Position numbers and translations under genes: made by a program. The notes beneath the pieces were generated by a model. The model worked only from the letters and a program-made list of their open reading frames with translations, did no database searches and had not been told where the DNA came from. Positions 10,792-63,982 of a DNA stretch of 64,000 nucleotides are shown one piece after another. This DNA is from Bugula neritina (Eukaryota; Animalia; Bryozoa): NCBI GenBank assembly GCA_964035545.1, contig OZ037773.1, positions 3,687,751 to 3,751,750 of the forward strand, read 5' to 3'. Numbering within the stretch: the first letter of the stretch is position 1; every line of letters starts with the position of its first letter.

Positions 10792-11660
10792 GATGCATGT
10801 TAGAACTTTAAAATAGTATGTTTTGCTCAACTCTAGAAATAATTACAACTTTGTGATAGCATTGCGCACACAGCCTGTATATTCAGCCGGATATATAAAT
10901 GACCTTTTTGAAACCTCAACAAGTTGTTTTTATGTTCTGATAGTGATAATTATTATGAATATAAGAAACCTGTATAAACAGTAAAAGCAATCATTATATT
11001 AGTAATGTGATAATATAACAAGTTTATTAATTGTTGTTAAATGCTAGTAACCAACAGTAAATATTTTGATTCTCATTAGATCTTGTATACTTCAAGCTAA
11101 CATATATCAGCAACAGATTTAATGGCCACAGAGGAATTAACAGCTATGAAGCATAAAACGGCAGCAACTCAGTTCTGATCAAAGAAAAGACAGCATACCG
11201 CTGCGTGTGTTGCCCATTTGTGCAGTAGTAAACGTTATAGCATGTATATGTGAATGCGTACTGTTATGCTTCGACTGATAGGAATATTCTTTTTTACCCA
11301 TGGTACCTCATGTTGATATTGAAGTACAAGTACAACTATTAGATTGTCTTATATGAAATACGTGACATATGAATACGTGGCACAATGTTGTAATGTACCT
11401 GTTATAACGTCTTGCTCATTACCTTGTGGTATTGTCTACATTAATTCATATATATTTCTACTGCCAGCTCAATTACTACGTAATGTAATTTTATTATGTA
11501 ATTTATGCTTGAATGGTGGTTAATTTGGTAAAGTTTAGAATTATGGCAACTTTTATATGCTCTTGTCTCAAGAAGGTGATTAAATAAAATATAGAGAAAA
11601 CTAGTAAGCTAAACATAGGATGGTATTATTGCCTTACTTGGACTTGCAGTTTGGAGGTAG

Positions 11661-33255: not shown

Positions 33256-33597
33256 TTTATTTCGTACAGTCGGCAACGTATAGCGTTGACTTTCTGACAC
33301 TTTTGCTGACTTTATGACAGCTTGCTGACTGCAGTGTCTTAAACGCAAATTGTAGATGCGCAGCAAAAGGTCTACGATTTCATTGGACGAAGCACCAACA
33401 TAATTATATACGTTTAAAACGTCTAACATTATATTTTTTGAATCACATGATCATGTCTGCATAACTTTATTAGTGTAAGAGCATAATTTTGCATTCAATT
33501 GATGATTCTCATTTTCCACTAGTAAATGCGTTAACTTTGCTGCGGCTAGAATCTGCATTTCAAAATTGCATCTTGTATACATTGGCCCGGCAACTCA

Positions 33598-34926: not shown

Positions 34927-37900
34927 TTAAAAGGAAAGCTGCATTGTGACAAAGCATGTGTACTGTGACAGAACATGTGTACTGTGACAGAACATGTGTA
35001 CTGTGACAGAACATGTATACTGTGACAGAACATGTGTACTGTGACAGAACATGTGTACTGTGACAGAACATGTGTACTGTGACACAACATGTGTACTGTT
35101 ACAGAACATGTGTACTGTTACAGAACATGTATACTGTGACACAACATGTGTACTGTGACAGAGCATGTATACTGTGACACAGCACCAAACAAAAGCAGAG
35201 ACAAGATTTTTAGTTGCAGTGGATAAACAGAGCAACACTCACATCTCTTAGTTGAGATTCCAAAGAGTCGGGATACTCAGCATTGGAAGGGGCCACCACA
35301 CCTCCCGCATGCAGCGGCTGAGAGAGCTGGTCGCCATGGTCTAAAGTGAGACCGTCAGTCGACCATCTGAAAGGTGCATCGCAAGAGTTGCTGAAAGTTG
35401 CTTCTTCCTGAAGAGAAAGTATGTTATTCCTGTGAGTCGCGAGAGACTGTCGTATCGGGAAACTTGCAGATGTGTGTAAGGTGCTTGGGGCTCCGTTGAG
35501 CATGTTTGTTGTGACGTATTGCGGCTGAGAGAGATTGGTCAGACCCAGTTGGCAGGAAGTCGCTGCGTAGTCTGTGTGAGTTGGAGAGAACAACTCTGAA
35601 AAACCGTTATTGACATTTAAACCGTTAGATTCATTGTTTCCTAGATTGGGCAGCTCACCGCTGGTATCCGAGGTGGGGTATGACACCTGCTGAGCAAAGG
35701 ATGTTTGTGATGAGTGAGCCGATGATGACGTAGAACTGAGGCTAGATAAACTCGATCTAGAGGCTTTTGATCTGCGGGGAGTCGCTATAGGCCGTTTGGA
35801 CATCTCGGCCGCAAAGCACTGGCTTGGTGGTAAACTGTTGGACGAACCAGAAAATTTAAACAAACTTTCAGCACTTGAAGATGGGTTCGACGCCATAAAA
35901 GGCTGTCCAAATGCGTTGAATTTTATATTGATTGGCTGTGAGTCGGATGAGTTGTTTGTTGCCCCAGTGCTGTGGCTAAGTACATTACCAGTATGACTCA
36001 TGGGCTGTAGGTTAAAGGTATACTGCATAGCGTGACCATTGTTTGTATCTTGTGTAGCCTGACTTATATCTTGTGTAGCCTGACTTATATCTTGTGTAGC
36101 CTGACCTATTAGGGTGGCATGACCTAAACCTTGTGCAGTGTGACCTAGATCTTGGGTGGTGTGTCCTAAACCTTGTGCAGTGTGACCTAAATCTTGGGTA
36201 GCATGACCTAGATCTTGGGTGGCATGACCTAGATCTTGGGTGGCATGACCTAGATCTTGGGTGGCATGACCTAGATCTTGGGTGGCATGACCTAGATCTT
36301 GGGTGGTGTAGGCGTGGCTATTAGCTTGGGTGTGGTTAACTGGCTGCATGCTGTTGGTAATATCCATGTTTTGCGGGGTCATAGCATTGCTGACATCCAA
36401 TCCAGACTGTAAGGGAGACAGGCTGGCAGCATTCCAGATTTGGCTGAGGAGGTCATTGTCAGGGGGGAGAGCATGAGGTGAAACCTGCAGTTAAGAAATT
36501 GAATAACAATGAAACATTCAGTTGTACTCGTGAAATGATTAGAAACATCAACTAAAGTAGAGTCTGTGTAGGACAGTCGAACAGAACGCAAACACAACAA
36601 GTGGCAAAGCAGAACAATTATAGACACCTCTGAATGATTTGTCTCTTGAGAACTTGTGGGCATTGGGGACAGTCCAGAGGTATCTGTGACTGGACTCTCG
36701 TCTAAAACAATGATATAGTGATATGATGATACAGTGATATGATAATACAGTGATATGATGACATAGTGATATGATGATACAGTGATATGATGATATAGTG
36801 ATATGATGATACAGTGATATGATGGTACAGTGATATGATGATACAGTGATATGATAATACAGTGATATGATGATACAGTGATGTGATGATATAGTGATAT
36901 GATGATACAGTGATATAATGATACAGCGATATGATGATACAGTGATATGATAATACAGTGATATGATGATACAGTGATATGATGATACAGTGATATGATG
37001 ATACAGTGATATGATGATACAGTGATGTGATGATATAGTGATATGATGATACAGTGATATAATGATACAGTGATATGATGATACAGTGATATGATGATAC
37101 AGTGATATGATAATACAGTGATATGATGATACAGTGATATGATGATATGAAATAACTAATAAGACAGCTGAGTAAGTGATCAAAAACAGTGGTAATAGGA
37201 AACATGCTGTGTGACCATCAGTTATAAAAAAAATACTCTCTTTAGTGTGCATTTATACAAAAACCAATACAATAACAAAACAATATTATTAGGTATTGAA
37301 AAAAAAAACCGGTTACCAACTCACTAGAATATGGGTTGGTGGAGGGCGTGTCTTGACCACCCTCAGCTCCCTGAACAGCCTGAGAGCTGGCTCCATCCAT
37401 AGATGAGTTATAGGCGCCAGAGTCCTGTCAATACAAGTAAATCCTAAGTTAATAAACGTTAAGTTCGACTATTTGCTGTTAGGAGTTGTCCCGCTGCAGC
37501 AGCAGAGGCCTGCATGGAAAACCGAATCTCACTACTTTACCTTCACAGGTGGTAAATCTTTCACTAGAATGGACAGCCTATGTTGTTGTAAAGCAGACTT
37601 TTGGAAAGTTACTTGATGCTTACTTTATAACTATTCTTCACTTCTAACAACTGTTGCACTGTATAGTAATATATTTACATCATTACAATATTACTACCAC
37701 AGTGCCACAATTACTACTATCCTGTACCGATTAGGACATGGCGGTGAAAGGTGAGAATATTACTACTACTCTAATATTACTACTATATTACTACTATATA
37801 ATTACTTCGTTATTACTATATTATTACTATATTATTACTATATTATTACTATATTATTACTACTCTAATATTACAGCTATATAATTACCACTTATCATTA

Positions 37901-40900
37901 TTACTATATTATAACTACTATAATTATTATAATAACTACATTACTGTATTCATAGCAATACTGTATTATTAGCACAATATTACTGGATTATTAGCACAAT
38001 ATGATTGTATTAGTAGCACTATATTACTGTATTATTAGCACAATATTACTGTAGTAGTAAGCACTATATTACTGTATTAGTAAGCACTATATTACTGTAT
38101 TAGTAAGCACTATATTACTGTATTAGTAAGCATTATATTACTGTATTATTAGCACTATATTACTGTATTACAACTAGACAGAACATACCCTAGCCCGGCT
38201 GTCACTGTAATATATAGCACTGCCACTATCAGGTACCACTGAAGGAATATCTGCAGCTGAAACAGATACAAAAACTCATCGCCTGAACAATGACGATAGA
38301 ATTAGGGCTGCAGATAACTCGGTTGAGTTTAAACAACTTTTTTAATTCAAATTTTCAACAAAAGTGAAGTTCCAAAAAAGTAACGTCTTCAAACAACTTT
38401 AATAGAGCTAATTGCCAGGATATTGCTAAAGTTAGCTAAGTGTTTGATTTGTACCATAAACAGCTATTCCATAACCACCTATTACAGCATGCCTTGAGCT
38501 GGTCTCTGGATAAGCCAAAGAATAAATCTACCATGTATAAAATGGAATGGGCAGTTACACTAGCTTTTTATAAGGAATGTATCAGCATACAAACCAGATG
38601 TAGGCCAGGTTCCAGTTGTTAAAGTTCTGCAACTCTAGAGGGAGCGGCAGTAGTCTAGGGGTTAGAGCATTAACTTAGTATACATGAGTCATGGGTTCAA
38701 ACCCCAGTAAAGGTCATTGGCGATATTAGGAAAAACATCCAGTCACAATAGAGGGGTTTCAAACATCCCTCTAGAGGAATTTGCATTTTAAAGTTGTCTC
38801 CCCCTAAAGGTATTGGGGGCAGTCTCCATAATATATAGAAGGCCCATAAAATAAGTAGAAATGTAAGGTTTGAGTGAAGACTACTACTAGTATAAGTTTC
38901 ATTTTTTCTGAGATTAATATTTTGGCATAAGTACACATATGAGCAGTTTCAAAAACTTTTTAAAAAATTTTGTCAATGATAAATGGCACAAAAACAAAAC
39001 TTCAAAGCATATTTGTGGTTTTGGTTATTGAGCAAATCTGAAGCTGGCAGCTGTCATTATTATTTGCTTTGCTGACTGTAACCAGTCTGTTTAGAGCTGC
39101 TAACCTTTCAACTCTTAGAACAATAATAACATGCTCGTAGACTATATAGCTGCACTAGTGGGCTCTGTCTTACTGAACTCCAAATGCTCCAAATTATGGG
39201 TTGGAACACATGCCTGTAAGTTTATGAAGGCACTGGCTCATTTGTATTAACATGTTCACGTACTTACACACCTATACTATGAAAATAACTAAGCCACCCT
39301 ACTATCTAATATTTCTATATATCAAAAAAATTATTATAAATATAAAGATATGTATTAAAATAGATAGATTAAATTTGTAATTTCAAACAACATCTTATCT
39401 AAAAATGCTAAACACTGTATAACTATAAATATGTTTTAAAAGCATTTGTTTACATGGCATGCCTGCAAGTCAATGAAAATATTTAGAGAACAGTAAAAAG
39501 AAGCATATAAATTTCAGAATAGTTAATTTTTTTCTGAGATAAATATTTTGGAAATGTCCCACAATTCAACGTTTAAATTAAGTCTGTAAAGAAAATTTCA
39601 CAGTGTATTTTCAATAAATAATTATTCTTGCAAGCTGGTTTGCGTTTGTTCTGGCATGCCATTTTACCTCCAGTTAGGTGCAGAAATGGAGATTTTGACC
39701 AAAAAATTCCCCCCTGAATAGCATACTGTTAAAAGTTTTGGGCTTGTGTTAGATAGGCCCTACTAACCTCCATTTTACAGTGGTCTAGTTAACTAGGTCA
39801 AAGTTCATTGAGGTGGAATTGTTTTATTAACCTCGTGTGTTGATAAAATACTATTATTAGATTTAGAACTTCTCTAAACAACTTCACAGTCTGATTAAAT
39901 ATCTGCGATACTTGCCTAGTAGACGATCCAAACTTAAAAAATAATATACTAAATCTTTGTATTACATGTATGGATAAAAAATAATGCAACAAATTGGCTA
40001 AAGCATGTTCAAGTAATGTGAAAAACTCGAAATATAAATGAGTCAAACTAGAGCTAGTCAAGTGTGTAGTGTTTTTGGCCGATTTATATGTGCTGTTTAA
40101 TCAGCTTATTATGTAGTGATATAATCCTATATAATGTAATTTAAGTTAGACAGCTAAAGTTGGACAGTTCTCATCGTGCACTTTCTTGAACAAGCAGTTA
40201 TGTAATATAGAAAGACAGCTACTCAACAGAGAGCTTCAAGCAAACAAAATTCTTGCACCGAGGTTGATTGAATACAAAACAGCTGCTGTTATTCTTATAG
40301 CAGCATGCATTGTATAAGAGATAGCCTGATGGTTCACATAGTTTACATCAATGAACTCAATAATTATTAAGCTATTCCAGCTCAGTGGTTTACATACAGT
40401 GACATACCACTGAAAATTATTAGAAACCACAGAAAAGATATAAAGGAGAGAATGCTGGCACAAAGGAAGTATAGCAATGTGGTTAAATATATGGCTGAAA
40501 ACTGACTTAGAGATAAATAAGTACAAAATGTACATAATATAGCTAAATCAGCAAAGCCAAATGATTTGATATAAAAAGTATTATCTGGGAATTTAGTGAA
40601 ACTTTGTAGTATTATTTAAAATTCCACCTTTGAGCAAGACCCGTATGGAGTAAAGCCAATCTTAATTTCATTAGTGTCATAAGAATGCAGTCATTATGAC
40701 ATAGTTCGTTCTTTCTATACTTTACAGCTGGTACTAAATGTACATTCCAACTCTTTTTTGGAAACAAGCCAAGTTGCTTTGGCTGAAAAGTGCTTTTTTT
40801 GATGATTTTTTTTCTGCAATGCAGCAGTATATAATTTACAATGCTCCAAAAACATTTCTGTATTAGGAATGTTGGTATACCAACAGCTTGCAAGAATATT

Positions 40901-43900: not shown

Positions 43901-46900
43901 TTACTACTACCACGGCTACTAAAACTGCTACTATTACCACCACTATCATTACAACTGCTACAATCACTGCTACTATTAGCACTACCACTATATCTGCTAC
44001 TATCACTATATCTAGTACTATCACTACTACTATTACTACTCTCACTATTAAGATAAACGCTGATACTCATGTTACATAAGACAAGAATGAAGCATTAAAT
44101 GATTAAATAATAAAACTGAAACTCACAGGTGGAGTTGTGGATGGGATCAGAACAAACTGGTTGAAGCAGTTGCCACCTGTTATTCTTTACGAATGCCAAC
44201 TGAAAGCATATCTGCACATAATTTCTGTCTATCTTGTTTAGAGGATTATCATCTGCGTCTGCAATGAGAGAATATGTTTGCAATAAGAGAATACGTCTGC
44301 AATGAGAGAATACGTCTGCAATAAGAGAATACATCTGTAATTAGAGAATACATCTGCAATGAGAGAATACGTCTGCAATGAAAGAATACATCTGCAATAA
44401 GAGAATACGTCTGCAATGAGAGAATACATCTGCAACAAGAGAATACGTCTGCAATGAGAGAATACATCTGCAATTAGAGAATACGTCTGCAATGAGAGAA
44501 TACATCTGCAATGAGAGAATATGTCTGCAATAAGAGAATACATCTGCAATGAGAGAATACATCTGCAACAAGAGAATACGTCTGCAATGAGAGAATACAT
44601 CTGCAATGAGAGAATACATCTGCAATATGAGAATACGTCTGCAATGAGAGAATACATCCGCAATGAGATAATATGCCTGCAATGAGAGAATACATCTGCA
44701 ATGAGATAATATGCCGGCAATAAGCAAATACTTGCATATACAATAAGAATGACGAAAACAGCATAGCTATAAACTATGGAAAAAATATAAAGTCACCCAA
44801 GGCATTTCTTTCAGTAGTTTACACACTAAAAATAAGCCACAAAATTCTAAAAATTCATTGAAATCGACCTTTTACATTGTATTGAGCAAAGCAGCTTTTG
44901 TTCAACATTGGTAAAAAGTTGGAGTTGTACCACTTTACCTACTGTAGAGCACACAACTCTACAAGGTCTTACACTAGTAGCCGCTCTGTATATTTATTAG
45001 ATAGCTTATGCCTACTTAATAAAGTTAGCTAGAGAAATGTTTATTAGAAATATATATACCTTGACAGATAGCAGCAAGACATGCTTTATAAAACTACAGG
45101 TTGGCTGATCCTTTGAATAAACATATTTTTAAAGTGTTTGTTTGTGTACATTGTAGAAGTTAATTAAAACCAAGTAACCCTCAAGTATTACTGTGACACT
45201 GATACCACACTAACAAGTAACCCTCAAGTATTACTCTGACACTGATACCACACTAACAACAAGTAACTCTCAAGTATTACTCTGACACTGATACCGCACT
45301 AACAAGTAACCCTCAAGTATTACTCTGACACTGATACCACACTAACAACAAGTAACTCTCAAGTATTACTCTGACACTGATACCACACTAACAAGTAACC
45401 CTCAAGTATTACTCTGACACTAATACCACACTAACAACAAGTAAAAATATCATGCATATATGTTGATAGCTAAGGAAACCCACTTCCATAAGGATCCACT
45501 TTCAACTTCTTGCGCTTGTCCAACTGGGGTTGCCAATCTCTGTTCTTAGCATTGTTCTTACTGGCCACCAGATAGACTTTGTCCAGCCTACGATAGAAGA
45601 GCATCTAACCAATCAGCACGGACAAGACAACCAAATGAATCAATAAAGTGAAGACACTAGTAGCAGGGGTGTAGCAGTAACTAGTAGCAGGGGTGTAGCA
45701 ATAACTAGTAGCAGGGGTGTAGCAGTAACTAGTAGCAGGGGTGTAAAAGTAACTAGTAGCAGGGGTGTAGAAGTAACTAGTAGCAGGGGTGTAGCAGTAA
45801 CTAGTAGCAGGGGTGTAGAAGTGACTATTAGCAGAGGTGTAGAAGTGACTAGTACCAGGGGTGTAGAGTTAGGCCAAGTTTTATCTGCCCCCCCTCCCCC
45901 GCGTGTCATTTTTAGGCGGTTATTAGTAGTGTATACATCATCAGTCCAATAAAAGCATTGCACTACTAGACTGCAGAGAAAATTCAACAATATCAGCTGC
46001 TCCAATGCCACTTCCCTTATCTCAACTACCATATATATACTACATACTGTATCTCAACTACCACATATATACTACATACTGTATCTCAACTACCACACAT
46101 ATACTACATACTGTATCTCAACTACCATATATATACTACATACTGTATCTCAACTACCACACATATACTACATACTGTATCTCAACTACCACATATATAC
46201 TACATACTGTATCTCAACTACCACACATATACTACATACTGTATCTCAACTACTACATATATACTACATACTGTATCTCAACTACCACACATATACTACA
46301 TACTGTATCTCAACTACCATATATATACTACATAGGCTACTGTATCTCAACTACCACATATATACTACATACTGTATCTCAACTACCACACATATACTAC
46401 ATACTGTATCTCAACTACCACACATATACTACATACTGTATCTCAACTACTACATATATACTACATACTGTATCTCAACTACCACACATATACTACATAC
46501 TGTATCTCAACTACCATATATATACTACATAGGCTACTGTATCTCAACTACCACATATATACTACATACTGTATCTCAACTACCACACATATACTACATA
46601 CTGTATCTCAACTACCATATATATACTACATACTGTATCTCAACTATCACATATATACTACATACTGTATCTCAACTACCACATATATACTACATACTGT
46701 ATCTCAACTACTACATATATACTACATACTGTATCTCAACTACCACATATATACTACATACTGTATCTCAACTACCACATATATACTACATACTGTATCT
46801 CAACTACCACACATATACTACATACTGTATCTCAACTACCACACATATACTACATACTGTATCTCAACTACCACATATATACTACTTACTGTATCTCAAC

Positions 46901-49900
46901 TACCACATATATACTACATACTGTATCTCAACTACTACATATATACTACATACTGTATCTCAACTACCACATATATACTACATACTGTATCTCAACTACC
47001 ACATATATACTACATACTGTATCTCAACTACCACACATATACTACATACTGTATCTCAACTACCATATATATACTACATACTGTATCTCAACTACCACAT
47101 ATATACTACATACTGTATCTCAACTACCACACATATACTACATACTGTATCTCAACTACCACACATATACTACATACTGTATCTCAACTACCATATATAT
47201 ACTACATACTGTATCTCAACTACCACATATATACTACATACTGTATCTCAACTACCACATATATACTACATACTGTATCTCAACTACCACACATATACTA
47301 CATACTGTATCTCAACTACCACACATATACTACATACTGTATCTCAACTACCACATATATACTACTTACTGTATCTCAACTACCACATATATACTACATA
47401 CTGTATCTCAACTACTACATATATACTACATACTGTATCTCAACTACTACATATATACTACATACTGTATCTCAACTACTACATATATACTACATACTGT
47501 ATCTCAACTACCACATATATACTACATACTGTATCTCAACTACCACATATATACTACATACTGTATCTCAACTACCACACATATACTACATACTGTATCT
47601 CAACTACCATATATATACTACATACTGTATCTCAACTACCACACATATACTACATACTGTATCTCAACTACCACATATATACTACATACTGTATCTCAAC
47701 TACCACATATATACTACATACTGTATCTCAACTACCACATATATACTACATACTGTATCTCAACTACTACATATATACTACATACTGTATCTCAACTACC
47801 ACATATATACTACATACTGTATCTCAACTACCACATATATACTACATACTGTATCTCAACTACCACATATATACTACATACTGTATCTCAACTACCACAC
47901 ATATACTACATACTGTATCTCAACTACCATACATATACTACATACTGTATCTCAACTACCACACATATACTACATACTGTATCTCAACTACCACATATAT
48001 ACTACATACTGTATCTCAACTACCACACATATACTACATACTGTATCTCAACTACCACATATATACTACATACTGTATCTCAACTACCACACATATACTA
48101 CATACTGTATCTCAACTACCACATATATACTACATACTGTATCTCAACTACCACATATACACCACACATCTGACAGACCGACACTCATGTAGGAAATGCA
48201 GCATTCTTACTGAATTATGTTATTCTCTGAAGTTATTTCCAAGTTCTTTTTAACAACAACTCCATTTTCTGCATTTTCACCCTCTAGTCTGTGAGGATGG
48301 GGCTTGGGGTTTTCATCACTGGACTCTGGAACTGAGACTAAAGAAGCCATGAGAGTTGCCTTTCCCTGGTAACCTATGACCTTGAAAAACAAATAGCTGA
48401 ACAGATTAAGAAAATGTTTAGAGATATTCAGTAACTTGACTTCTGATATTTTATACATGTTTATATATAATAACATTAATATAATATAATAAATTATAAA
48501 GGAATCAAAACATTTACTTTCATTATAACAAAATAAAACCCTTTCATCGGTCACATCCTTGTTTAAGTGATAGTCAAGGTTTGTCTCTATTAACTGAATG
48601 CCAGCTCTAATATTTATCACCTAAAAACAGTGTTTGTTTCCTGGAGATATTACTAACAATGTGACATCACATCACCAGGTGTTAGAGGATGGTGTATGTT
48701 TATGTTTGGTGTCTGCTTACTAAACAAACACAGCTGCCGGATTTCACCTCAATTGTAGAGGTTTCACTTTTTGTATATTTCAAACCAGTGCTGTTCGAAA
48801 TCATTTGTCTGGAGGTTAGAGGGTCAAAAGCAAACTTATGGAGTACAGAATAAGCAACAACAGCCGCTACACTAAGTTCCTGGTTTATCTTTTTTATTAC
48901 TGCCAGTGACCATTGCACATGGAGGCAGATATCAGCGTCAAGAGAAAGTAAAGTAAACATAATATCTGGTGCAGAACATCTATTTGTAGATACCTAACAA
49001 CGAGACTGTTGGACCATTGCATATAGCATTGGGTCAACTGTACTTTATATACCAGGAAGATATGTGGTGTTCTGACAATAATATAATATTCAGTTCAACT
49101 GTAACTGTATAATAAGTATCCTAATAAATGGAAGTATTTTAATTCTAATAAGATAAGAGTGAGGTTGTTCAGTGCAGAGGTGAATATAGTTACATGCGTT
49201 CAGTCAATATCTTCTTTACATTCTGGAGTAATGTGACACCCTGAGCTTTGTTGTTATCGATACAAGGAAATGTTGCCCTCTGCGTGTTTAAATATTATGA
49301 TCAGATATTCAAGAGTTCGGGTATGATCAGTTGTACATCATTATGTAAAATATCCCATAGGTAAAAGCATCATTTGGCAGTTGATTTGCCCATTAATTCA
49401 CCCTGTATACTATGTTCCAGGTCTCAGCACCATACAGTAAGGCAGCAAGCACCTAGTTTACTATATTCATTATATTGCTCTCTGTAGTATTGAGGGGACA
49501 GTGCAGGATAGTAAATGCAAAGGTGTAGTTTACTGGGGGTAGTATAGCTGGATGGGGAAACCAAAGTGCCACAGCAAACATACCATATCCAACTACCAGG
49601 CATTGACAGAAAGCCATTGTGTGAGCACCCACAGAATCCGGAAAAAGTTACTAGTTTTTATTTGATTAAGTGAACAAGGAAGTTAATAACTGCAAGTAGT
49701 GAACTGAGAGGTTGTTTGTCACAGCAGAGTATAACTGGTGGAATGACGTATTAGTAAGTTATTAGGCATGCGCGTACAAGTTTGACGAGCCAGCTATCTT
49801 CAACGGTATCTTTACGGAATGGCTTTACAACACGGTGGAAGTTTCCAAACTATTACGTATGGGAAAATTTATTTCCCAGGAAAGTTGACTCGTGTAATAA

Positions 49901-51035: not shown

Positions 51036-53502
51036 ATGAAGGGTCAGCCGTCATGGGGAGAAGGAAGGCCAGTCTGAAACACAAGGAGATAGATTTACTG
51101 ACAATGTCAAAATGGCAGCACCATGGCAGCTTATGTCATCTGCTTGTTTCTCCTGAGCTCATTTAGTTAAAGCAGTGATCTGTATGCTTATTGTTTTCCA
51201 AATAGAGAAAATGGCAACGACCCCAAAATAGATAACTAATACAGTATTGGACAATATTCTATTTGTGGATCACTTCTTACCATCCTTTTTTGACAAACAT
51301 ATCTTTATGATATGCAGCTGGTCTTCGGCCTTCTATTTATATAAAAATAGTATAGAAATGGTGACGATGGAAAACATGAATTTCTTATCAAGTGTCCACT
51401 ACATTCCTTAATTGCAACATCAAGTTACTAACAAAGTTACACTGCATCATCTACTGCATAAGGTTAAACATTGATTTGAATTAAGAAGCTAATGAAGGTG
51501 GTTAAGTCAAAGCAAATCAAGTCAATGGCAAATCAAGGCAAGTGCTGTCTTGTCATTTCCCAGTAACAACTTTGAAATCTTTCAAGACCACAAGCTGGCT
51601 GTCAACCCCAAGTGACCAGACCAAGTCCACAATACATAATGCCTTCACAATACATAATATTTACTCGAATGATTATACACAACTAATAGAGATTGGCAAG
51701 TAGTTGCATGTACATCAACATTAATAGAAACAATTTGAAGCACCGATCCACCTATTTTGAAAGCACTATTAAGCGAAGCCCACCTACTAAAGATCTATAT
51801 CTTAAAAACTAGATAATAATTAAACCTCATTGAATAATGAGAACCTTTGAATCTTCAACAGCGTCAAAATTATGTTTGAGAGCAAAAATTACTGTTGAAA
51901 CCTTAAAGGATCAATCAATATGATTAGCAATTAATTTCTGCAAGTGCTAAATAAGCAATTGGTATAATGTCTTAAAGAAATTCCAGTGACTTGCCACCTA
52001 AAATTTTCATGTGAAATGGCATTAAGTCAATTAGATAAGCAAATCAATGAATTTTCAATTACTAAATGGCATCTAGTTCTACCGAACAATTATATGACAC
52101 TACTGATGTGTTAATTTTCTTAAGAGAACTTTCATGACTGATGGTGCGCATCAAAATAATGAGATTTGTAAATCTTTCCAGTGTAGATTCCTATATATAA
52201 CAGAGTAACTCAATATAATTATGCTAACATGAAAAATCCTTTTATGACATAATATTTAAAAACTTTGCTTTAATGATGTCATCACCGAGCAGAGACTATT
52301 TATACTACAGATACAAAATTTTTTTTAGTACAACTGATGACTGCAAACAACATAGAATAGACTACAGATTGCGTATTAGTATGGAATGGGTTCCTGCCGT
52401 TTTGTTCACAAGTTGTTTAGTACACAAACTATTGTAAACAAAATCAATAATGAATTAACCTTAAACCCAAATGATAAATAAATGTACAAAATTATTTATT
52501 TTAGTTAATTTATACTGATGTGTACGAAAGGACCTAACAAGTGGGTACGAAACGACTTATGTACGAAATGACCTGTACCCCCTTGATCTTCATATTCATA
52601 TTGAATGGGTTAAGCCCTAAGACCTCTCGAAGAGAGTTATTTTGTCTGAGTTATATGTTAATATTACTAACAGCATAGTAGTAGTACTGTTAGTGTTACT
52701 GTGTAACTGTAAGACTAAGTGTTGAGTGTCTCCGTTGGTGAATAACTATAAGTTTTATCTTTCGAATTGATCGTGTTGCTGTTACTGTTACTGTTAGTGT
52801 TTCAATAGATTAGTTTATCGACGATAATCAGATCAACTTGAACAACAACATCATGATCAACATGAACCTGAACATTATGATTAATACAGATTATATTTAT
52901 TCATTAACTTTAAGTTCAACTCATAACTTATTAACTCAATAACTGGAAGTTATAACTTATAACTATAACTATAAGTTATAACTAATTTACTCATAGTAAT
53001 TACTAATAAAATTTAATGAATAATTAAATTATAACCACAATGCAGTTTTCTTTGTATAATAATAAATTAGTAACTAATGAATCTCATAATTTCGTCAGCT
53101 ACGTGACAGTAGTTTCTACTTACTAGCAATAGTTATACTTATAGTTGTAGTACACATACTGATACCGATGGCGTTAGTGATACTGATAGTAACACTCGCA
53201 CTCCGAATCAGAATGAGAGTTACCACACCAAAATGTTCTGGAACAGGCTCGCTATATTTTATGCGTATTGACTTCAGTCATCGACAGACGATCGTGCGTG
53301 GATGCGGTCCAAATAATATTATTACTGTATCAATAAAATTGCGTGCTAAGCGCAGTTGTCGACTTTTTTTACCGACTTTTCCTACAAAACCAACAATGGC
53401 TTTGTTACGAACCTTTACCTGATCACCCGTATTATCCCTTAAAAAATAATAACCGATAACGAGTCAAGCATTAATTTTAGTACCGCTCAACTTTTAAGAT
53501 AA

Positions 53503-53512
53503 GGGAATTCCC
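53503..53512. promoter_or_regulatory. Perfect palindromic kB site GGGAATTCCC between the two Rel genes
   Basis: aaGGGAATTCCCc matches GGGRNWYYCC on both strands; ~85 bp from a candidate first-exon donor of copy A at ~53419. Confidence 0.65.
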
Positions 53513-53532
53513 CAAATCCAACTGATTTGGTC

Positions 53533-53545
53533 TGGAAATGAGTCA
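53533..53545 (+). promoter_or_regulatory. TGGAAA-TGAGTCA composite (AP-1 site abutting an ETS/NFAT-type core)
   Basis: Exact AP-1 heptamer 53539-53545, 26 bp from the kB site. Confidence 0.45.
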
Positions 53546-55149
53546 CGTTATTTTTTCAATTTATAGTGGGCTGCTTTCATCAATGCCAGTGTTTTCATGA
53601 AAGGTGAATCTAATTATATTACACAAGACTTTCGTGCCTATTTCTTTTAGCTTTACTTCTAGTTTTATATTCTCCCGTTTAACTAAAACTTTAGGTACAA
53701 GACCAAGTTGAAGTGGCAAGTGGTACTACTAGTACTAGTACTTAGAGTTAATAGTTGCTATCAGTATCACATTTACAATTACTGAGTATAAGTATTACTA
53801 TTACTATTAGTATTACTGTATTAATATCACTATTATTCTTACTATTGTATTAGACACTAGTAGTGTAGTACTACTAGTACCAGATCATTAGTATTTAAGT
53901 AATACTAATAGTATTCACTTTCAGATTGAAATTCTTTATTTATTAAATTGAATTGACATGATTCAGTCATTTGATTATAGTTAACCTGAGCCCGTATTTA
54001 CACCCATCCCATTATTCTTCTTAACGTGAGAGTGGGCTAAGAGGAGCAAACTAGTCGCTTATAGTTATTTAACCCCAATAATGTAGCATGCAAATGTATG
54101 CCTAATACTAATACAGTAATAGAGTTTTAAAAGCAAGTACAGAGCTAGCATCAATTGCTGTCTGGGGAGGTGCGTTCCAAACATCAATTACTCTTTGGGA
54201 GAAAAATTGTTTTCTAATGTTTGTTCTTGCATTTACGGATCATTATTAATAATGTTTACTAATACTAATAGTGATATTAATACTTATAGTTATACTTAAT
54301 ATTATAGTTATACTAAGTTAATGTTAGTGTTACTTATAATAATAATTACAGTTTCACTTTATAGTTTATTGAAAATGTCAATGACTCATTCAATGAGTGA
54401 TCTATGGTTCAGATTGAAATTGACGGTTTGGGTTTGACCTTTTCGGATTACTAAGCATTGCCATTAGCTGGTCATTCATGCACTCCACTTGACCACTGTT
54501 GGAGTATTTTTATCTTCAATGCATGATAGTTTAATTTAAGTCAGACTAAAGTTTAAACCATGTAGGCTCATAAATCACTTTATCATAATGATAACTTGAC
54601 TGGAAAATCAATTCGTTTTCAACACTTACTGTGACATTAAACTTATCTGTAAAATGTAATGTAAGCAGTAATGACTAATTTAATGTGTGATATTATAAGC
54701 ATTACTATCACTGTGACTATAAGTATAGCCAAATTCGTGTTCATAATCATATTGATGTTAAATATGAGACCACGATTGTGATTTTTACGTTGAGTGATTG
54801 TAAGTGTAAAACTAAGGATACATAGATTTTATATAAATAATATTATATAAGTATTACATTACTTAACTATTTGTATAAATATAAGTATTGGTTTTACTTT
54901 TAGCAATTGCCAATGCTAGACTACTATTGGTACTATTCATTTTATAATTGGACCAACAGTATCATAGTTGCACTAAATATATTTCGGTAATAATCAAGGT
55001 CATAGTTGTGAAGTAAATGTGAATACGATGTATTTACTATGAGTATTACTATGTTAACTATTCTAAACTTTGCAGCTGTCAATCATGGTTAAAATGTTAT
55101 TGTGACTAAGTTCAAGTTAACGCTAGGTCACAGTTGTATAAAGTCGGGT

Positions 55150-55292
55150 AATCGCCCAGATGGCAAAGTTGAACGTTGGTCGGACAATAAATTGCTCCTA
55201 TGCCGTATTAGAAGACGTCCTTAGCCCGCTCTAAAAAGGCCTTTTCCATTCTTTCTCACAGACATAGTGATTATAACCTCAAGTGAGTTTTA
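55150..55292 (+). mobile_element. Degraded 3' part of the SINE family
   Basis: attgctcctatgcc...gtccttagcccgct...ttctcacag...gtgagtttt. Confidence 0.55.
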
Positions 55293-55351
55293 TGTACTAA
55301 TACTGTGAATTATTTTAAAGGGGGTCAGCAATTTATATAGTAACAACAGAA

Positions 55352-58300
55352 ATGACTACCAACGAACTGCTTGAAGTTACTATTGCCGCTCAACCACCCG
55401 AATGTATTGGGTGAGTTATATTGACAGTCTAAGCCAAATTTATAGAATATTTGTTTTTAAGTTACTGCTCCCAATACTTTTTTAAAAACAGTTGAAGTTT
55501 TCTTGTAAATTGATCACTAAATAGTGCAACTGTATTTGTAGCAAAATTCGATATTTAGATAAAGATGGTAAAGGAGGCGGGCCCATAAAATGTTACCATG
55601 ATTCAAATAGAACAGGCTTTTCTGTTCAGGTAAGGAAAACATTAGCCATAGCTAGAGCAACTTTACTAAACAATTTGAATATTAAGTAGACCTTCAAATC
55701 ATCTCAGTTGTACATAGTATTGACACATAATTGCTAAAATAAAAAAAATGTTGTATAACGTTTAATAGTTACCAGATTTTTCATATTCATAGTTATTTAT
55801 TGAAAATTTTATTTCAATATAGAACTTTAACTGAAGTTGTTATGATGGTGACAATGTTTCTACCTAATCGAAAAATACGATGAAATATTCTAATTCTACT
55901 GTGTAGGTGGAGTTGAAGAAGCTAAACCTTTCATATAAAATTTTTGCGACTTTTCTCTCTGCTTTAGTCATCTTCATAGGGTTTATCTTGTTTTTTGATA
56001 TAATTAATATTCTCTTTAGTCAAGCCAAGTAGTTTTTGTAGCTTTGATGCACAATACCAAATTGTTAAATATTATTAAAAAAAAATGGTCAAAATAGCCT
56101 GCGTTTGGCCACCTGGTGGCTTAATGTGTGCTACACTATCATGTGACCGCCCTGCCACATAAGCAGGTTCTAAGAAGGCTATCAATTGAATGCCGAGGCA
56201 GATATCCTTGAATATTTATTCTAGCCTATGGCCCAGTACATAGGGGTCTCTGCCTAGTGTGTATCAGCTAGGTTGCTCAATCAGCTATTTTCAAGGTCAC
56301 CAGCAATGTCAGGAAAAGCATTCCCCATAAGGCACTAATTAGAAACGCCTTAGGCACATTGTAGTGTTTGGCAGAGATTGTGGCTTGTCTGAGTGTGCTT
56401 GGAATTTCCGAGGGGGATTTTACATTACGTAATGTTACCCTTGAATGCATACTCACTTCAAACTCTTTACGCATATACATTAATACGTGTAGAATATAAG
56501 CACTCACTATAGTTAGAAGAATATCAATGCCACAATTACTGTTGCTTGTTGCAGGTCAAATCAAATTCTCCTCAGCCTCATGGCAGCCAGGTCAAGGTTA
56601 TAGCTTTCTGTGTGACGGACACGCAGCCCGTGGCGTACCACCCTCTACTGCTCATAGAAAATGGTGGAGGCACAGACCAGGTGCATGGAGTAGTCACTAG
56701 AGATCTCTGTCTGACGGATAGAGTGAAGAACATCAGGTATAACACGCCCATTTCCTTCTGGGTAGTTTATTTCATCAGCAGATGGGCTATCCTTGCTGAT
56801 TTCATAGTTGTAGCTGATATCGAGAGTTGCTGCTTACAGTGTAAAAGAAATGAAAGGTTTGTAGAGACAATATTGAAAAAGTTGGTATCCGTTTTGTACA
56901 GTGACCACAAATATGCCATGCTATTTCGCACTGGGCCCCATCATCACTTCTGACAGCTTTATTTTTATATACTGTTATTTGTTATTATGTTTCCTTTCTA
57001 ATTGTTTGTCTGCTCTTGTAACTTATGCTAGTTGTGAAACACTGTATTATGATGAAAATAAAACACACACACACACACACACATGCTGGTTCAAGAATTG
57101 TTTCACAGTCATGCATGCGTGTTGGGTTTCTTCCTCAGCCACCACCACAAGGGGATGGGGTGTTGAGTCATTACAATATTTCGTAGACAGGTTTTATTAA
57201 AACTATTCAAATAGTATTCAAATAGTAATATAATCGGTATATTTAATGAAGTCATTTTAGTAATATTAGAAACTTTTCACAAAAGTTTAAACAAGTTTCA
57301 AAGACAAAAATTTCAAAAGGGTGACTCAATGTTTTTATTTGTACAGGGCAACTGAAACGGAAAAGTTTCCCCTTCCAGTAAGACTTTTGTGTGCATTTGC
57401 TCTTAAATTAGAAAGTTTAAAAGTACTGACACACAATGTGTAAACAGTCTCTTTACTGGCTCACTTCCTGTTATACATAAGGGAGCAGCCGTGATCTAGG
57501 GGTTAGAGCGTTTGCCTAGTAAGCTCGAAAGTCATGGGTTCGAGCCCGGACAAAGGCCATCGGTCATGTTAGGAAGAGCATCCAGTCATAATTGCTCCTG
57601 TGCCTCATTTAAATAAGTCATTAGCCCCATTTAACAAAAAAACTTTTCATCAGGGGTTTTCTCACAGGGATAGTGACTATAAACTTACGTGAGTTTTTTC
57701 CTATTATATACACTTTATGTTCTGTTGTCAAAGTACTAGTAAAACATTTTCTCTTCAATGTTGAATTTTTTTAATTAATTATTGTTGATTAACCTTGCTG
57801 TAATAGTGATTTGGTCTGCATACTGCACCTGTAGTCACTACTAAACGGTTGTAGTCACTACTAAACGGTTGTAGTTGCTACTAGACGGTTGTAGTCACTA
57901 CTAGACGGTTGTAGTTACTAATGTACAGCTGTAGTTACTCCCAAACAGCTGTAGGTGGTACATTAACTAGCAGTTACAAAAACTCATAACTACATTATCT
58001 TAAGTTGTAAGTACCGTTACTGATTCTAGCAATAAAGGTTAAAATCTGAATTACTGTGTCAAGCTGTCAACCCCCCCCCCCTTAATGCTGGTAAAGGGGG
58101 GGGGCTAAAACTAGTTGATTGGCTGCAAAGGACAGGAGTTGAACTGACATGTTTTATTTCTACTGGAATATAACAACAGTTTAAAATTCATGCAGTGATT
58201 GATGTTGAGTGTGTTATATTTTGCAGTTTTGGCAGAATCAAGATAGCTCAATGTAGCAAGGACCTTGTTAGAAAGTGTCTTGAGGAAAGGGAGAGGCATT

Positions 58301-61300
58301 TGAACATGCTTGGAATCAATGGTGTGTAAAGAATAGAATTAGCCAAAGTTTGTCTAGAGGCAGGGTATTCATCGAAGCTGTCTAGATAATTGTTAACATA
58401 GCTGTCTTCTCTTGTTTTAGTGTGTTTTTTCTGTCTATTTATATTTTATAATAATAGTTGGTATAGTCAGTAAATCAGTATAGCAGTCAGTAAACTCATG
58501 AATGAGTGTTTTTCCTATTAGAAATTTATATTTAACTTATTTTCATCTCCCCTGTAACTTTGAACCATTCCAAACAATGCAAAGTGTGGAATATAATTTT
58601 TTAAATTGAAATAAAATATATAAAGTGTATAAATAAATTTTGGACCTTGGCTCCGTATTGACTCTGATTGTATTATATTTATTCTCAGCACAACCTGGTG
58701 CCGTGCAGTCTGGGACAGTCTCGAAGAACAACGAGTTTAAAATAGCTGTATATGTCGTGGAGACAACTCCAGATAGTGGAAAGAAACTCATAAACTCTGT
58801 AATGACCGACTCCGTGGAAATTATTAGTGAGTTAGAGTTATCTCCCCTGTTGCATAATCTGTATATTGGATATAGTCAGATAACTTTTCTATATATGACT
58901 TGTTTTTAATGTTTTAGAATTGTTTAGTTCAGTCCTGATCCTTTGTAGCAAAATTTCGAGTCTAAGCAAGGATTGTACATAAAAACCAAAGTCAATTTTT
59001 TTAATTATTTGCATGAGATTATATTACATTGGAGTTTTACAGTTTTTTTTTCTGTTCTCCAACAATAACTTTTCATAAACAAAATTCGAAAAAATGTGAC
59101 TAACCTAAATAATCTTTCCCTAGTATCCAATGTTTCCACTAAATAATTATATTATTTACTTTTATCAATACAAGTACATCCATTTTTTAAGATTTTACAT
59201 AAAATAATTTATTGTTCCGTTAATCTTGTTATACTTGTCTCCTATAAATTTCCAACATACATTGATGTTTGTGACATCAATTATAGTGTTGAGCCTTTGA
59301 AGTAGTCTTGAAGTACTGTTATGTTTTGCTTTCAGCTGATTCGTTCAAAATAAAAAAAGTTGTGCCCTGTGAGATTTCAGCCAATGGTGGAGAAATTGTC
59401 TTAATTTGTCAACCTTTCAAGTCAAGCGCAGGTAAATGTTTTTTAATTTCACGATATTACCACTATTAAATTTTAGCAAAATAAAGCTGCCCTCTGTCAA
59501 ATATATGAAAATATTATGTTGCTTTATTTAGAAAAATGTTTAGATTTAGATGGCTTTCGATGCAATAGACCCATTTCAGCACTGATCAGTAACTAAAACC
59601 ACAAAAATGCTTTCAAGTTTATTTCCGTCAAATTATGCATGAAGAAATATTTTTAAAAAATCTTCTGAACTGCTAATACATGTGCATATATCAAAATATC
59701 TATCTCCTAAAATAACAATTTTATAACATAATTAGAATTTTAAGTAGCCAAACTTTAAATTTTTAATGAGTTTGCTCTTTATACAAAGGTTCAACCTATT
59801 CACTTTGGGAGGACACAACTTTTAATTATAAAGGGGATATCAGGGACGACTGAAAAGGGTCTATTATTTTAAAAAGTTGTAAAAGATTGTCAAATCTCTA
59901 CAACATTACAACAACTGTAAAACCACCTGCTTGATCAGGAAGAAAAATGATGAAATAATAAATTTAAAGATCTTCTGTTGAAGTCGTTTTGTTAGCTGCT
60001 TTGTAAAATATTCTGATTTTTAAGTCTAATTTCACTTGTAAAAAGCTGTTTCTTCTATATATCAACAATATTATTGAGTTGTTTATCAATAAAAACAGTT
60101 GAAAATCTTGTGATGAGGACAACTCCTAATCTGTTGTTTTATTACTGGTAGTTATATGTCATATTCCTGTAAGCAATGGTGATTTAGACACAATGGCTGT
60201 TAAATTTTGTGACACATTTGGCTGGGAGATTACGAAACCATTGAATAAGAAGAATATTCATGAAAGTTCAGTCATTAAACTGGATGCCCCGAAATATCCT
60301 TCTCCGCAAAGTAGACGCTCCAAAGTGTTTATCAAGCTGTGCTCAATGACCTTGAGAAAACCTAATGCAAGTCCTGGTTTCCCTTTTACTTACAGTAAGC
60401 ATTCAACTAGCAACTAGTTGCTACTAGTAAATAGTAACTAGTTGCTAGTAACTAATAATTAATTACTAGCAACTAGTTACTAGTCGCTAATAACTAGTTG
60501 CTAGTAACTAGTTGCTACTAGTAAATAGTAATTAATTACTAGTAACTAGTTGCTAGTAACTAGTTGCTAGTAAATAGTTACTAGTTGCTAGTAAATATTA
60601 ACTAGTTGCTAGTAAATATTAACTAGTTGCTAGTAACTAGTTGCTAGTAACTAGTTGCTAGTAACTAGTTGCTAGTAAATAGTTGCTAGTTACTAGTGAT
60701 TAGTTACCAAAATACTAGTAACTAGTCTCCACAAACCATTGATGTTCTTATTTTATTGTTAATATCTTGTTTTGAAGTGAGTGTAATCCTCAATATAGTG
60801 GTCTTGAAGTGAATACTGTATATGCATATAATATTAACAACTATTTCTGAAAGGTATTTCATGGTGATTTCACTATTGTTCTGTTATTAGCTATTGTTAG
60901 TTTGTTTTTCTCATTAAAAATAAGTCTTATATATTCAAATTGTATAATATAATTGTTTTTAATTTAGTTTCTGATGAGAGTGTATGCAGACCTGATCGAA
61001 AAAGAAGGAGAATGAAAGGAAATATTGAGGTTAGCAATATACCTATAAAATATTTGTATCGAAATGTGTGTAAGCGTAAGTGTGTATGTATAATGTATAT
61101 GTGGGTGGGTTTGCATGTATGCAGCATGTATGGATATATACATAGATGTAAGCATCAGTGAGTTCATACATTGTGCAAATACAATTGGTGGACATCTTGT
61201 GTTAATATAGTAAGTCAAAGTTACTTTCTAAACATGTTGAAGTTATATTAATAGATCATCAGTTATTTCAAATAACTAAAAGATAATCAGATTGTTGTCC

Positions 61301-63594
61301 AGTAGTAATGGCATTGGATTAGTAATGGAACAAATGGCAAAGTAGGTAAAAATGGCACATTTTCAATATTAAGGTTCAGGGTAGTGGTTTAGGTTTGGGG
61401 TTGAGGGTTTGAGTTTGAGATTGGGAAAATTTAACAAACTGTGCCGTTTTACCTACTTCTCTATTTGTAGCATTATTACCTGTGCCATTATTATCTGTGC
61501 CATTATTACCGGACACCCATTTGATTATCTGTGCTACTTTTACCTAAAATCAATAAAATGATCAGTTCATTGATATCAAATTACGTTTTTATTACCATTC
61601 CTTGTTCATAGGTTGTGAAGAAAAAGCTGGCAGTTGTTGCGGACAATGAAGACGTGCCGGCTGTACTCAACAGCATCTCCTTGTCTTCTGGTTCCTCTGC
61701 CGGCTCCTTTCCGAGTAACGAGAAGTCGGTGATCGAGTCAGCCATTACGAAGTCACTTGAGTCAGAAACTGGTGCTGCTTACCAACACACTTCCATTCAG
61801 ACATGCGCCAACTCCGTTGACATCGGACAAAGTCGCAACATTGAAAGTGAACTTCTAAGCGCTGCTTCACAAGGTGAAAGCCCTGAAAACAGAGCCGAAG
61901 TCGGTGGTCTGTTAAATGTGGTGGTTGGCTCAATGCTGCACCAAACTCAACGTGTCTCTAATTTCCACTGCTCTGATCAGAATCAAAATTACTTCTCTCC
62001 GAGCTCTGCTGGGAAGGGTGCTGCAACTCTACCACCCCATCCTTCTAATGTGGCTTGTGGGTTCTCTTCTCAAGATACTGGATTCCTACCAGTTGGTTTC
62101 TACGCTTCTCCGATTCACCAAATCAGCAACTCTCAAGGCTCAGCTGTTACTAACTCTCACACAGATGGTTTTATGACCAACCACCTTGCTACTGCTGTCC
62201 ACTCCCACACGAATGGTGTCATGACCAACCACTTTACTCCTGGTGTCAACTCCTATACGAATGATGTCATGACCAACCACCTTGCTACTGGTGTCAACTC
62301 CTATACGAATGATGTCATGACCAACCACTTTACTCCTGGTGTCAACTCACACACGGATGGTGTTGCTGCTGCTACATCTCATCATGTAGCTCATACCAAA
62401 GCAGAGAGCAACCAAGCTCCATATTCCAATCATACTCCATTAATGTCAAATCAACGGAGTCTTTGTTCGTTAGACATTGCATCTGACCTGCACCCCTGGC
62501 CTTCGTTCAGTGCCGTGAGTAGACAACAGACCACCAAGGTGTCTGGGGGAGATAATTCGAGTCTGAATCTGAGCGAAGAAGTAAGTTAAATAATGCAAAT
62601 GTATGTTAAACAGTGCAGCTGTAAGTTAACCGGTGAAGCTGTAAGTTAAATAGTGCAGGTGTGAGTTTAACAGTACCTTTGTGAGTTTCAGTAAAGTACA
62701 TACAGTTGGTGCATACTCTGATAGGTTAGTACTCTGTATATGAATATATGAAAGCCTTAAAGTATTTAAGATAAAGTTTTACAGTAAGTTATAATCAATT
62801 CACTAGGTTCATATTGTTACCTACAAACTATACTGTTACAACGTGATACTTGGTTTTACTTCCAACTCTGTATCTTTTGTTTTAGCTGAATGATAAACTT
62901 TCTTTTCGGGAACTGTTATCTTCAGACAAGGTTTGTTTTAATCAATTTAAATCTTTGTGTTTTTATTCAAGGAGTTAATACTACTTTGATGTAGAGTCCA
63001 TTTTTACATTTTGCATCCTGGTTCATTTTTTTCCAATGAAAATGTGTGCCACTCCTTGGTCATAATTCAGGTATTTTTAGTTTACTTTTATCTACAACTC
63101 TTAGTAACATATAATATCAATAATTTTGTATAATATATAATATAATATAATGTATGGCATACTATATAATATATAAGGGTATATTATATAATGCATATTC
63201 ATTATCATCAGAACCATAAAATATGTATTTATCCAGGGTTATTCTCTCTTGTTTTAGAATTTAGATAGTGTGATGAGTACGGGCTCCAGCTTATCCACCC
63301 CGCCATCTAGTCTAGGTCAACCCAAAGAAAAATCTGTACGAGACGTGGTAAGTTGGCATCTGGGTGCCAGTTTGACAGTGTTTTATCTTATTACCAGAGC
63401 TAGTAATACTTTAGTGAGTAAGGTATAGTCACTAAATAACTGGTAGAGTCACTGGTAGTGGTAGTAGCAGCAGTAGTGGTGGTGCAGTAGTGGTAGTAGT
63501 AGAAGTAGTAGTAGTAGTAGTAGTAGTGGTAGTAGCAGCAGTAGTGGTAGTAGTAGTAGTAGTAGTAGTGGTAGTAGTGGTAGTAGTAGTAGTG

Positions 63595-63648
<54 letters not shown>

Positions 63649-63653
63649 ATAGC

Positions 63654-63684
<31 letters not shown>

Positions 63685-63740
63685 ATAGTAGTAGCAGTAG
63701 CAGCAGTAGTAGTAGTAGTAGCAGTAGTAGTAGTAGTAGC

Positions 63741-63772
<32 letters not shown>

Positions 63773-63982
63773 CAGCAGTAGTAGTAGTAGTGGCGGTAGT
63801 GGCGGCAGTGGCAGTAGTAGTGATAGGGGTGGTGGTAGTAGAGGTGCTAGTTGTAGTTTAGTCACTGCAGTAAGGGTATTTGTAGTAGTGTAGTCCCTAG
63901 GACACAGGTGCTTGGGGTAGTATAGTCACTAGGGCGCAGGTACTTGTAATTTCCTCTGTATTTGCAGATTATGGGCCAATAA
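55352..63982 (+). CDS. Highly divergent Rel/NF-kB-family protein, copy B (RHD + IPT + NLS + low-complexity C-terminus), ~666 aa
   Basis: 11 phase-compatible exons: 55352-55410, 55542-55629, 56555-56736, 58227-58321, 58689-58826, 59336-59431, 60188-60394, 60968-61029, 61612-62580, 63258-63347, 63968-63982. Motifs VTIAAQP..KIRY, VIAFCVTDTQPVAYHPLLL, FGRIKIAQCSKDLVRKCLEER, FKIKKVVPCEISANGGEIVLIC, VKFCDTFGWE, NIHESSVIKLDAPKY, FPFTY, NLS RKRRR. Confidence 0.8.
57481..57698 (+). mobile_element. Intact tRNA-derived SINE (~218 bp)
   Basis: tRNA-like head with A-box-like tgatctagggg and B-box gggttcgagccc; central ggaagagcatccagtc resembles the Meta-SINE core (from memory); T-rich tail; at least 5 copies in the window. 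Confidence 0.8.
57830..57955. repeat. 20-bp minisatellite (gtagtcactactaaacggtt)
   Basis: About 6 degenerate copies. Confidence 0.8.
59567..59862. mobile_element. 296-bp MITE, AG...CT termini, AT duplication (ISL2EU-like)
   Basis: ca[at]agacccatttcag ... ctgaaaagggtct[at]ta; short TIRs with one mismatch. Confidence 0.7.
60405..60725. repeat. Degenerate ~14-bp repeat (tagttgctagtaac)
   Basis: Starts just after the donor at 60395. Confidence 0.85.
61295..61551. mobile_element. MITE family B copy
   Basis: acaaatggcaaagtaggtaaaaatggcacattttcaat...ttacctaaaatc, homologous to 15693-15951. Confidence 0.75.
62150..62362 (+). repeat. Coding 48-bp repeat (TNDVMTNH[LA/FT][T/P]GVNSY) x~4
   Basis: In-frame 16-aa repeats in the large exon of Rel copy B. 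Confidence 0.88.
62581..62700 (+). repeat. Degenerate 20-bp repeat x6, each unit starting with a splice-donor hexamer
   Basis: gtaagt/gtatgt/gtaagt/gtaagt/gtgagt/gtgagt at 62581, 62601, 62621, 62641, 62661, 62681. Confidence 0.75.
63455..63845. repeat. (GTA)n trinucleotide microsatellite, intronic
   Basis: Direct reading. Confidence 0.95.

Follow-up and report, generated by a model that had tools for sequence, protein, structure and literature searches.

Two adjacent genes, here called A and B, in a 64-kb stretch of an AT-rich bugulid bryozoan genome of 216 Mb (contig OZ037773.1, G000:C9:3687751-3751750; hereafter the window) are quite probably both real, intron-rich members of the Rel/Dorsal class that lack ankyrin repeats and stand beyond the canonical set, with A acting as a kB-type factor and B as a modulating or altered-specificity partner. 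The two genes point away from each other with start codons 4,316 bp apart, and both show the same layout (i.e., an RHD, which is putative in B, an IPT domain, a predicted nuclear localisation signal [NLS] and a long disordered tail; feature positions throughout are positions in the window, see Table 1). The NLS-like basic run lies in the exon directly after the IPT domain in each gene (SRKERR in A, RKRRR in B), the first seven introns have identical phases (2,0,2,1,1,1,1), and all introns are of the GT-AG type. Each gene also carries one giant low-complexity exon (1,242 nt in A and 969 nt in B), and a Pfam scan of the giant and C-terminal exons of both genes found no ankyrin repeat or any other Pfam domain. 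The original prediction for this stretch had described such a pair, i.e., two spliced RHD-IPT-NLS genes placed head to head with starts 4.3 kb apart, seven matching intron phases and a single giant low-complexity exon in each gene without ankyrin repeats, and our gene models agree with it on all of these features.

The window is colinear with the Bugula neritina contig VXIV02001974.1 (L019), with approx. 80-95% nucleotide identity that includes introns and intergenic DNA, and with a synonymous divergence of approx. 0.16 per site. The source is therefore a bugulid that is closely related to the sequenced B. neritina yet distinct from it. Synteny, which had been proposed as a check on the pair, was confirmed by this comparison: the head-to-head layout of A and B is also kept in B. 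neritina, where an 808-aa annotated neighbour gene occupies the place of B.

Gene A was modelled with 10-11 exons that encode 773 aa (intron phases 2,0,2,1,1,1,1,1,0,0). A profile search using the IPT exons of both A and B recovered two orthologues of A, namely KAF6028225.1 from B. neritina (P0003; 356 aa, "RHD domain-containing", 88% amino acid identity) and a 779-aa Watersipora subatra protein annotated as "proto-oncogene c-Rel-like" (P0004). Spliced alignment of the former to the minus strand (score 1498) yielded nine exons, from the ATG at 51035 to position 38189, with intron phases 2,0,2,1,1,1,1,1. The putative terminal micro-exon of A is doubtful because its acceptor AG reads AA in L018, a related metagenome contig from the Joint Genome Institute (JGI). 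When the exons of A were compared to Pfam one at a time, two colinear RHD_DNA_bind (PF00554) matches were found (19.5 and 24.6 bits, each under the 27-bit cut-off alone), and exon 7, the main IPT/dimerisation exon, matched RHD_dimer (PF16179; 34.8 bits, E = 1.8e-8) above the cut-off of 28.3. Precomputed PF00554 matches are present on both orthologues.

Exon 2 of A holds the recognition loop RYRYSSEAGRANITG (RYRYSSEAG), in which both Arg, the Tyr and the Glu of the family pattern R-x-R-Y-x-C-E-G are kept and the Cys is replaced by Ser; the same Cys to Ser change is seen in the loop of the Watersipora orthologue, RFRYKSEAGKSTITG (RFRYKSEAG). Another candidate for the loop exon, at 48.7 kb (GLKYTKSE), was rejected, as the B. 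neritina protein puts the loop exon at 50.7 kb. The SRKERR run occurs in exon 8, immediately past the IPT domain, and is followed by a Pfam domain-free tail of 416 residues rich in Ser, Thr, Gln and Asn, the giant exon of which contains a 21-bp coding repeat (ATQDLGH). This exon is also open in L018, with 66% protein identity, indels that are all multiples of three and a ratio of nonsynonymous to synonymous substitution rates (dN/dS) of 0.55. Compared to B. neritina, the RHD region of A showed a dN/dS of 0.42 (P = 2e-4), and its exons are 92% identical as compared to 70-90% for its introns. Gene A thus appears, from these comparisons, to be constrained by purifying selection yet fast-evolving. 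It must also be old because a Watersipora orthologue exists, and on present sequence comparisons it is a divergent Rel paralogue common to cheilostome bryozoans (Bugula, Watersipora). Most of intron 3 of A is taken up by 67 copies of a 32-bp tandem unit (46018-48166), an array whose GC skew is strongly negative; B. neritina has a shorter array of this unit.

Gene B, which is invisible to standard domain annotation, was modelled with 9-11 exons that encode 678 aa. Nine exons are firm, from the ATG at 55352 to position 62580, and the intron phases of the full model are 2,0,2,1,1,1,1,0,0,0. We compared the spliced protein to a hidden Markov model (HMM) of the Rel family built from nine sequences (i.e., A, its two orthologues, the canonical Rel and NF-kB-like proteins of this genome, three fly Dorsals and one JGI protein). 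B scored 77.7 bits (E = 4e-26) over HMM positions 11-308, while the best of 200 shuffles reached 3.9 bits, and it scored 48.5 bits against an HMM built without A sequences. As a guard against exon choice by eye, a canonical Rel/NF-kB HMM that lacked both A and B was run on every stop-to-stop piece of the window (2,753 in total); exons of A and exons 7, 3, 6 and 4 of B were within the top 11 pieces, in colinear HMM order. Exon 7, the main IPT exon of B, keeps all six invariant IPT columns and was matched by hhalign to nine Rel IPT pieces with a probability of 95.8% (E = 6.8e-9); exon 3 gave a weak match in the same type of comparison (E = 0.009, probability 4.6%). When the A protein was spliced-aligned onto the B region, exon 7 was the only exon recovered (score 83 as compared to 40-53 for controls). 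On these alignments, A and B appear to be too distant for pairwise methods.

Exon 2 of B encodes a degenerate recognition loop, KIRYLDKDGKGGGPIKC, identical in B. neritina, in which Lys stands in place of the first Arg and of the Glu, and Asp in place of the Cys; the segment KIRYLDKDG keeps only the second Arg and the Tyr of the family consensus. B has also lost the KK that follows the GIQC position, and its interdomain linker is shortened by a 5-residue deletion. Its predicted NLS (RKRRR) is encoded by exon 8. The giant exon (323 codons) is rich in Ser, Thr and Asn, contains a 48-bp coding repeat and has a GC content of 48% as compared to 34% for the window. Directly after the donor of this exon lies a 20-bp tandem repeat (62581-62690) that presents GTAAGT or GTGAGT six times, each step of which would shift the frame by 2 nt.

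Several observations weigh against this reading of the locus, above all with regard to B. The support for every junction in A and B comes from homology, splice motifs and conservation between species, and the 3' ends of both genes are putative; the exons of B were, moreover, initially chosen by eye. B stays below every Pfam gathering cut-off: exon 7 matched RHD_dimer with 17.4 bits (E = 0.0046), and none of the other exons had a Pfam match, so that Pfam, which had been proposed as a check on both proteins, gave a match above cut-off for the RHD_dimer of A and none for B. A phmmer search with exon 7 gave no match among PDB sequences. An AlphaFold2 model of exon 7 (predicted local distance difference test score 71.5) found NF-kB dimerisation domains as all of its top 28 Foldseek matches in the PDB (template modelling score 0.60-0.70, E = 0.05-0.3), a test that is partly circular because the input alignment consisted of Rel-family sequences. 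B, furthermore, evolves with a dN/dS of 0.69 compared to B. neritina (P = 0.44 against a value of 1; 109 comparable codons in exons 1-3), these exons are conserved no better than the flanking introns (92-97% as compared to 89-93%), and the phylogeny described below neither supports nor rejects a sister relationship of A and B. Look-ups of exons 7 and 3 in the ESM Atlas returned chance-level bacterial matches or nothing, and no B-like protein was found by a profile search of representatives or by metagenome scans with the giant exon and exon 7 of B. Nevertheless, a Rel-type match and fold, on which the original prediction of a second gene depended, were both obtained for B (HMM, hhalign and an NF-kB-like structural model), and its claim of fast evolution was upheld by the dN/dS values of both genes.

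Three further Rel-homology genes are located elsewhere in the genome (Table 1), i.e., a canonical Rel/Dorsal-like gene, an NF-kB p105/Relish-like gene and an NFAT5-like gene. In the 10 kb that adjoin the window (C9:3751751-3761750), no additional Rel-like gene was seen, as tblastn with four Rel proteins reached E = 3.8 at best and two family HMMs run on all open pieces reached E = 19. The intron phases of the canonical Rel gene (2,0,2,1,1,1) equal the first six of A and B, at matching positions. One intron, of phase 2 and immediately ahead of the RY motif, is shared by A, B and canonical Rel and is missing from the NF-kB-like and NFAT5-like genes. Because of this pre-RY intron pattern, B can be classified as a Rel-class gene and not as a derivative of NFAT or p105. 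Gene comparisons within this genome therefore support the view, also put forward in the original prediction, that A and B lie outside the canonical Dorsal/Relish set and are extra to the three genes named above; this bugulid would then have at least three Rel-class genes in addition to an NF-kB-like and an NFAT5-like gene.

Alternatively, A and B could each be the plain orthologue of a separate known subfamily, such as Rel beside NFAT or Rel beside NF-kB p105, and be neighbours by chance. The segment RYL...G..G..IK in the loop of B does faintly recall the NFAT5 loop RYMTEGSRGAVK, and the approximately unbiased (AU) test did not reject a tree that unites B with the NF-kB-like gene (P = 0.11). 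However, separate NF-kB-like (with ankyrin repeat) and NFAT5-like genes exist in this genome, B has the Rel-class pre-RY intron and lacks the extra intron found inside the IPT domain of the NF-kB-like gene, and neither A nor B has ankyrin repeats. We thus regard this explanation, which the original prediction had named as one that would speak against a pair of sister paralogues, as largely refuted and extremely unlikely.

A closer kinship was proposed in the original prediction, in which an ancient local inverted duplication gave rise to A and B as sister copies that are now regulated jointly and possibly act as a dedicated heterodimer or as an activator/decoy pair. The shared intron phases were offered as evidence for the duplication, and in this respect the prediction was not sustained: the phase match shows membership in the Rel class and not sisterhood, because canonical Rel has the first six phases at the same positions. 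As a caution on method, matching intron phases of neighbouring family members are no proof of sisterhood when the whole family shares those introns. Comparisons with a small reference set of Rel proteins were indecisive. The tree, suggested as a check on sisterhood, recovered the clade of A with support of 100/100 and gave B, whose branch measures 5.2 substitutions per site, a position without support; the AU test accepted B with A and B with canonical Rel equally (P = 0.24 for both). The protein identity of B is 22.9% with A and 26.6% with canonical Rel, and its post-NLS motif PAVLNSISLSS is closer to that of canonical Rel, PAVLDHISIDTNSS, than to that of A. A sister relationship is nevertheless consistent with the adjacent and divergent placement of the genes, kept in B. 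neritina, with the loss of recognition-loop residues from B while its IPT domain and NLS were kept, and with the reading IHE in the IPT domain of both A and B, in place of the H-[KRQ]-Q of other Rel proteins. Two other candidate characters for A and B were rejected, namely a shared one-residue loop insertion (the alignment is ambiguous there) and the post-NLS motif xPAV[VL] (canonical Rel has the motif too). Adjacency and the single shared IHE pattern are thus the sole pointers to sisterhood. As to co-regulation, a conserved kB palindrome is located between the genes, but the number of kB sites in the window is not significant (reached in 15 of 100 shuffles) and a promoter used by both genes would, at 4.3 kb, be a long one. 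A and B may have originated by local inverted duplication; the full proposal of sisters that act as a dedicated pair is, on balance, unlikely.

A different concern is that B could be a decaying or recently released duplicate, i.e., a young pseudogene or an unconstrained gene with its frame still open. This would agree with its dN/dS, indistinguishable from 1, with exons that are no more conserved than introns relative to B. neritina, with the disappearance of DNA-contact residues and with Pfam matches below cut-offs. Against this, the frame of B is intact over 678 codons and approx. 10 GT-AG introns, and the chance that the 323-codon exon contains no stop, given its own composition, is 3e-7; neutral sequence on a branch of approx. 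5 substitutions per site would presumably have gathered many stops. Exons 1-3 have 87% protein identity in B. neritina, which retains the start codon as well as the splice sites and the frame of these exons, and a block upstream of B is 92-97% conserved. The B. neritina record at the place of B is an AUGUSTUS gene model of 808 aa with a faint RHD_dimer match (annotation method described in PMC7576161). We therefore consider decay quite unlikely as an explanation and read B as a gene whose frame has long stayed open, though under constraint that is weak or has shifted; a recent loss of function may have occurred.

With both genes regarded as real Rel-class members, their features would point to different roles. 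A retains most of the base-contacting loop residues and most likely still functions as a transcription factor of the kB type that depends on its NLS and activates through a disordered tail; it probably binds kB-like sites, to judge from its loop. B belongs to the Rel class by gene structure and, at a divergence of approx. 5 substitutions per site, appears to retain the pattern that defines the fold, together with the IPT dimerisation domain and a strong NLS, while several canonical DNA-contact residues are lost. Because the contact residues are lost and the IPT domain and strong NLS are kept, a role as partner or modulator is the most economical hypothesis for B, which would most likely be a modulating or altered-specificity subunit and not a canonical kB binder. 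In the structures of p50 and p65, the basic residue in the H-[KR]-Q of other Rel proteins contacts the DNA backbone; both A and B have Glu at this position. DNA binding, dimer partners and shared regulation of A and B are what we infer from such features. If B is a partner that does not bind DNA, it would illustrate how a degenerate Rel subunit can exert regulation in nature. A bolder and rather improbable possibility is that B is a Rel-fold subunit without canonical base contacts that pairs with A or canonical Rel and in this way weakens NF-kB output or steers it elsewhere, and that both genes are switched on together from the kB-containing intergenic region, in what would be a bryozoan-specific feedback module.

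Within this intergenic region, the kB consensus GGGAATTCCC occurs as a palindrome at 53503-53512, the only one in the window, and the DNA around it is also conserved. An AP-1-like TGAGTCA lies approx. 35 nt from the palindrome (53503-53550), and both motifs are conserved in B. neritina (L019:7634). A block upstream of B (54100-55075) is 92-97% identical to B. neritina as compared to 66-88% for the remaining intergenic DNA and, on the basis of this conservation, is a candidate promoter or 5' untranslated region of B. The B. neritina annotation begins its gene model in the matching block, at an upstream ATG.

Among known systems, A and B most resemble class II Rel proteins (Dorsal, Dif, c-Rel, RelA), with which they share an RHD N-domain (putative in B), an IPT domain, a predicted NLS and a long, disordered, ankyrin-free C-terminal tail. 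Six or seven of their intron positions and phases match the Dorsal-like gene of this genome, and the best named matches of the A orthologue are fly Dorsal proteins. They differ from this class in that the loop RFRYxCEG is changed to RYRYSSEAG in A (Cys to Ser), with HE in place of H-[KR]-Q, while in B the loop is altered at its first Arg, its Cys and its Glu, the interdomain linker is 5 residues shorter, and identity to any other member is just 23-27%. Drosophila Dorsal and Dif are linked Rel-class paralogues from a lineage-specific duplication whose products can dimerise together, and they provide a parallel for two Rel-class paralogues that are adjacent in the genome. However, Dorsal and Dif both keep the canonical loop and are easily recognised, whereas here B is extremely diverged, the orientation is head to head, and both a sister relationship and dimerisation of A and B are putative. 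NF-kB p105/Relish and NFAT5 share the Rel-homology fold, and both families are represented in this genome; A and B differ from them by the absence of ankyrin repeats, by the Rel-class pre-RY intron and by loops that are neither the HGG of the p50 type nor the TEGSRG of NFAT5. A full-text literature search, including a review, found no publications on Rel/NF-kB in bryozoans. B is a new and very divergent member of a known family; its neighbour is a divergent member that had been annotated before, and the phylum is one for which the pathway has no published description.

Table 1. Positions of genes A and B, their exons and the region between them (window positions), and of the other Rel-homology genes of the genome (contig positions)
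Feature	Position	Strand	Description or basis
Gene A	51035 to 34927	minus	RHD, IPT, NLS, then long disordered tail
A exons 1-5	51035-50902, 50786-50714, 48380-48211, 45587-45484, 44258-44127	minus	spliced alignment to P0003
A exons 6-9	43758-43660, 42635-42417, 42005-41937, 38256-38189	minus	spliced alignment to P0003
A exon 10 (giant, 414 codons)	36484-35243	minus	phase-0 junction from exon 9
A putative terminal micro-exon (LSF, stop)	34938-34927	minus	fits phase-0 donor at 35243 and splice motifs
Divergent intergenic region	51036-55351		4.3 kb between start codons
Gene B	55352 to 63982	plus	layout as gene A: putative RHD, IPT, predicted NLS, disordered tail
B exons 1-5	55352-55410, 55542-55629, 56555-56736, 58227-58321, 58689-58826	plus	GT-AG gene model
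B exons 6-9	59336-59431, 60152-60394, 60968-61029, 61612-62580	plus	GT-AG gene model
B putative last exons	63258-63347; micro-exon 63968-63982 (IMGQ, stop)	plus	splice motifs and reading frame only
Canonical Rel/Dorsal-like gene	C9:4685109-4690412 (locus to 4691221)		RFRYECEGRFAGSILG; 0.95 Mb away, on the contig of A and B
NF-kB p105/Relish-like gene	C1:16852769-16866821		loop RFRYEVEGKAHGGLQG; ankyrin repeat approx. 10 kb downstream
NFAT5-like gene	C1:3553556-3558345		loop HRARYMTEGSRGAVKD

Two other features of the window were observed. Downstream of A, a neighbouring open frame on the minus strand (32671-33450) has a match to rhodopsin-family G protein-coupled receptors just below cut-off (7tm_1, 26.2 bits). 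A repeat region at 9900-10830, without a match in Pfam, has several frames open on both strands and a strong GC skew (0.55).

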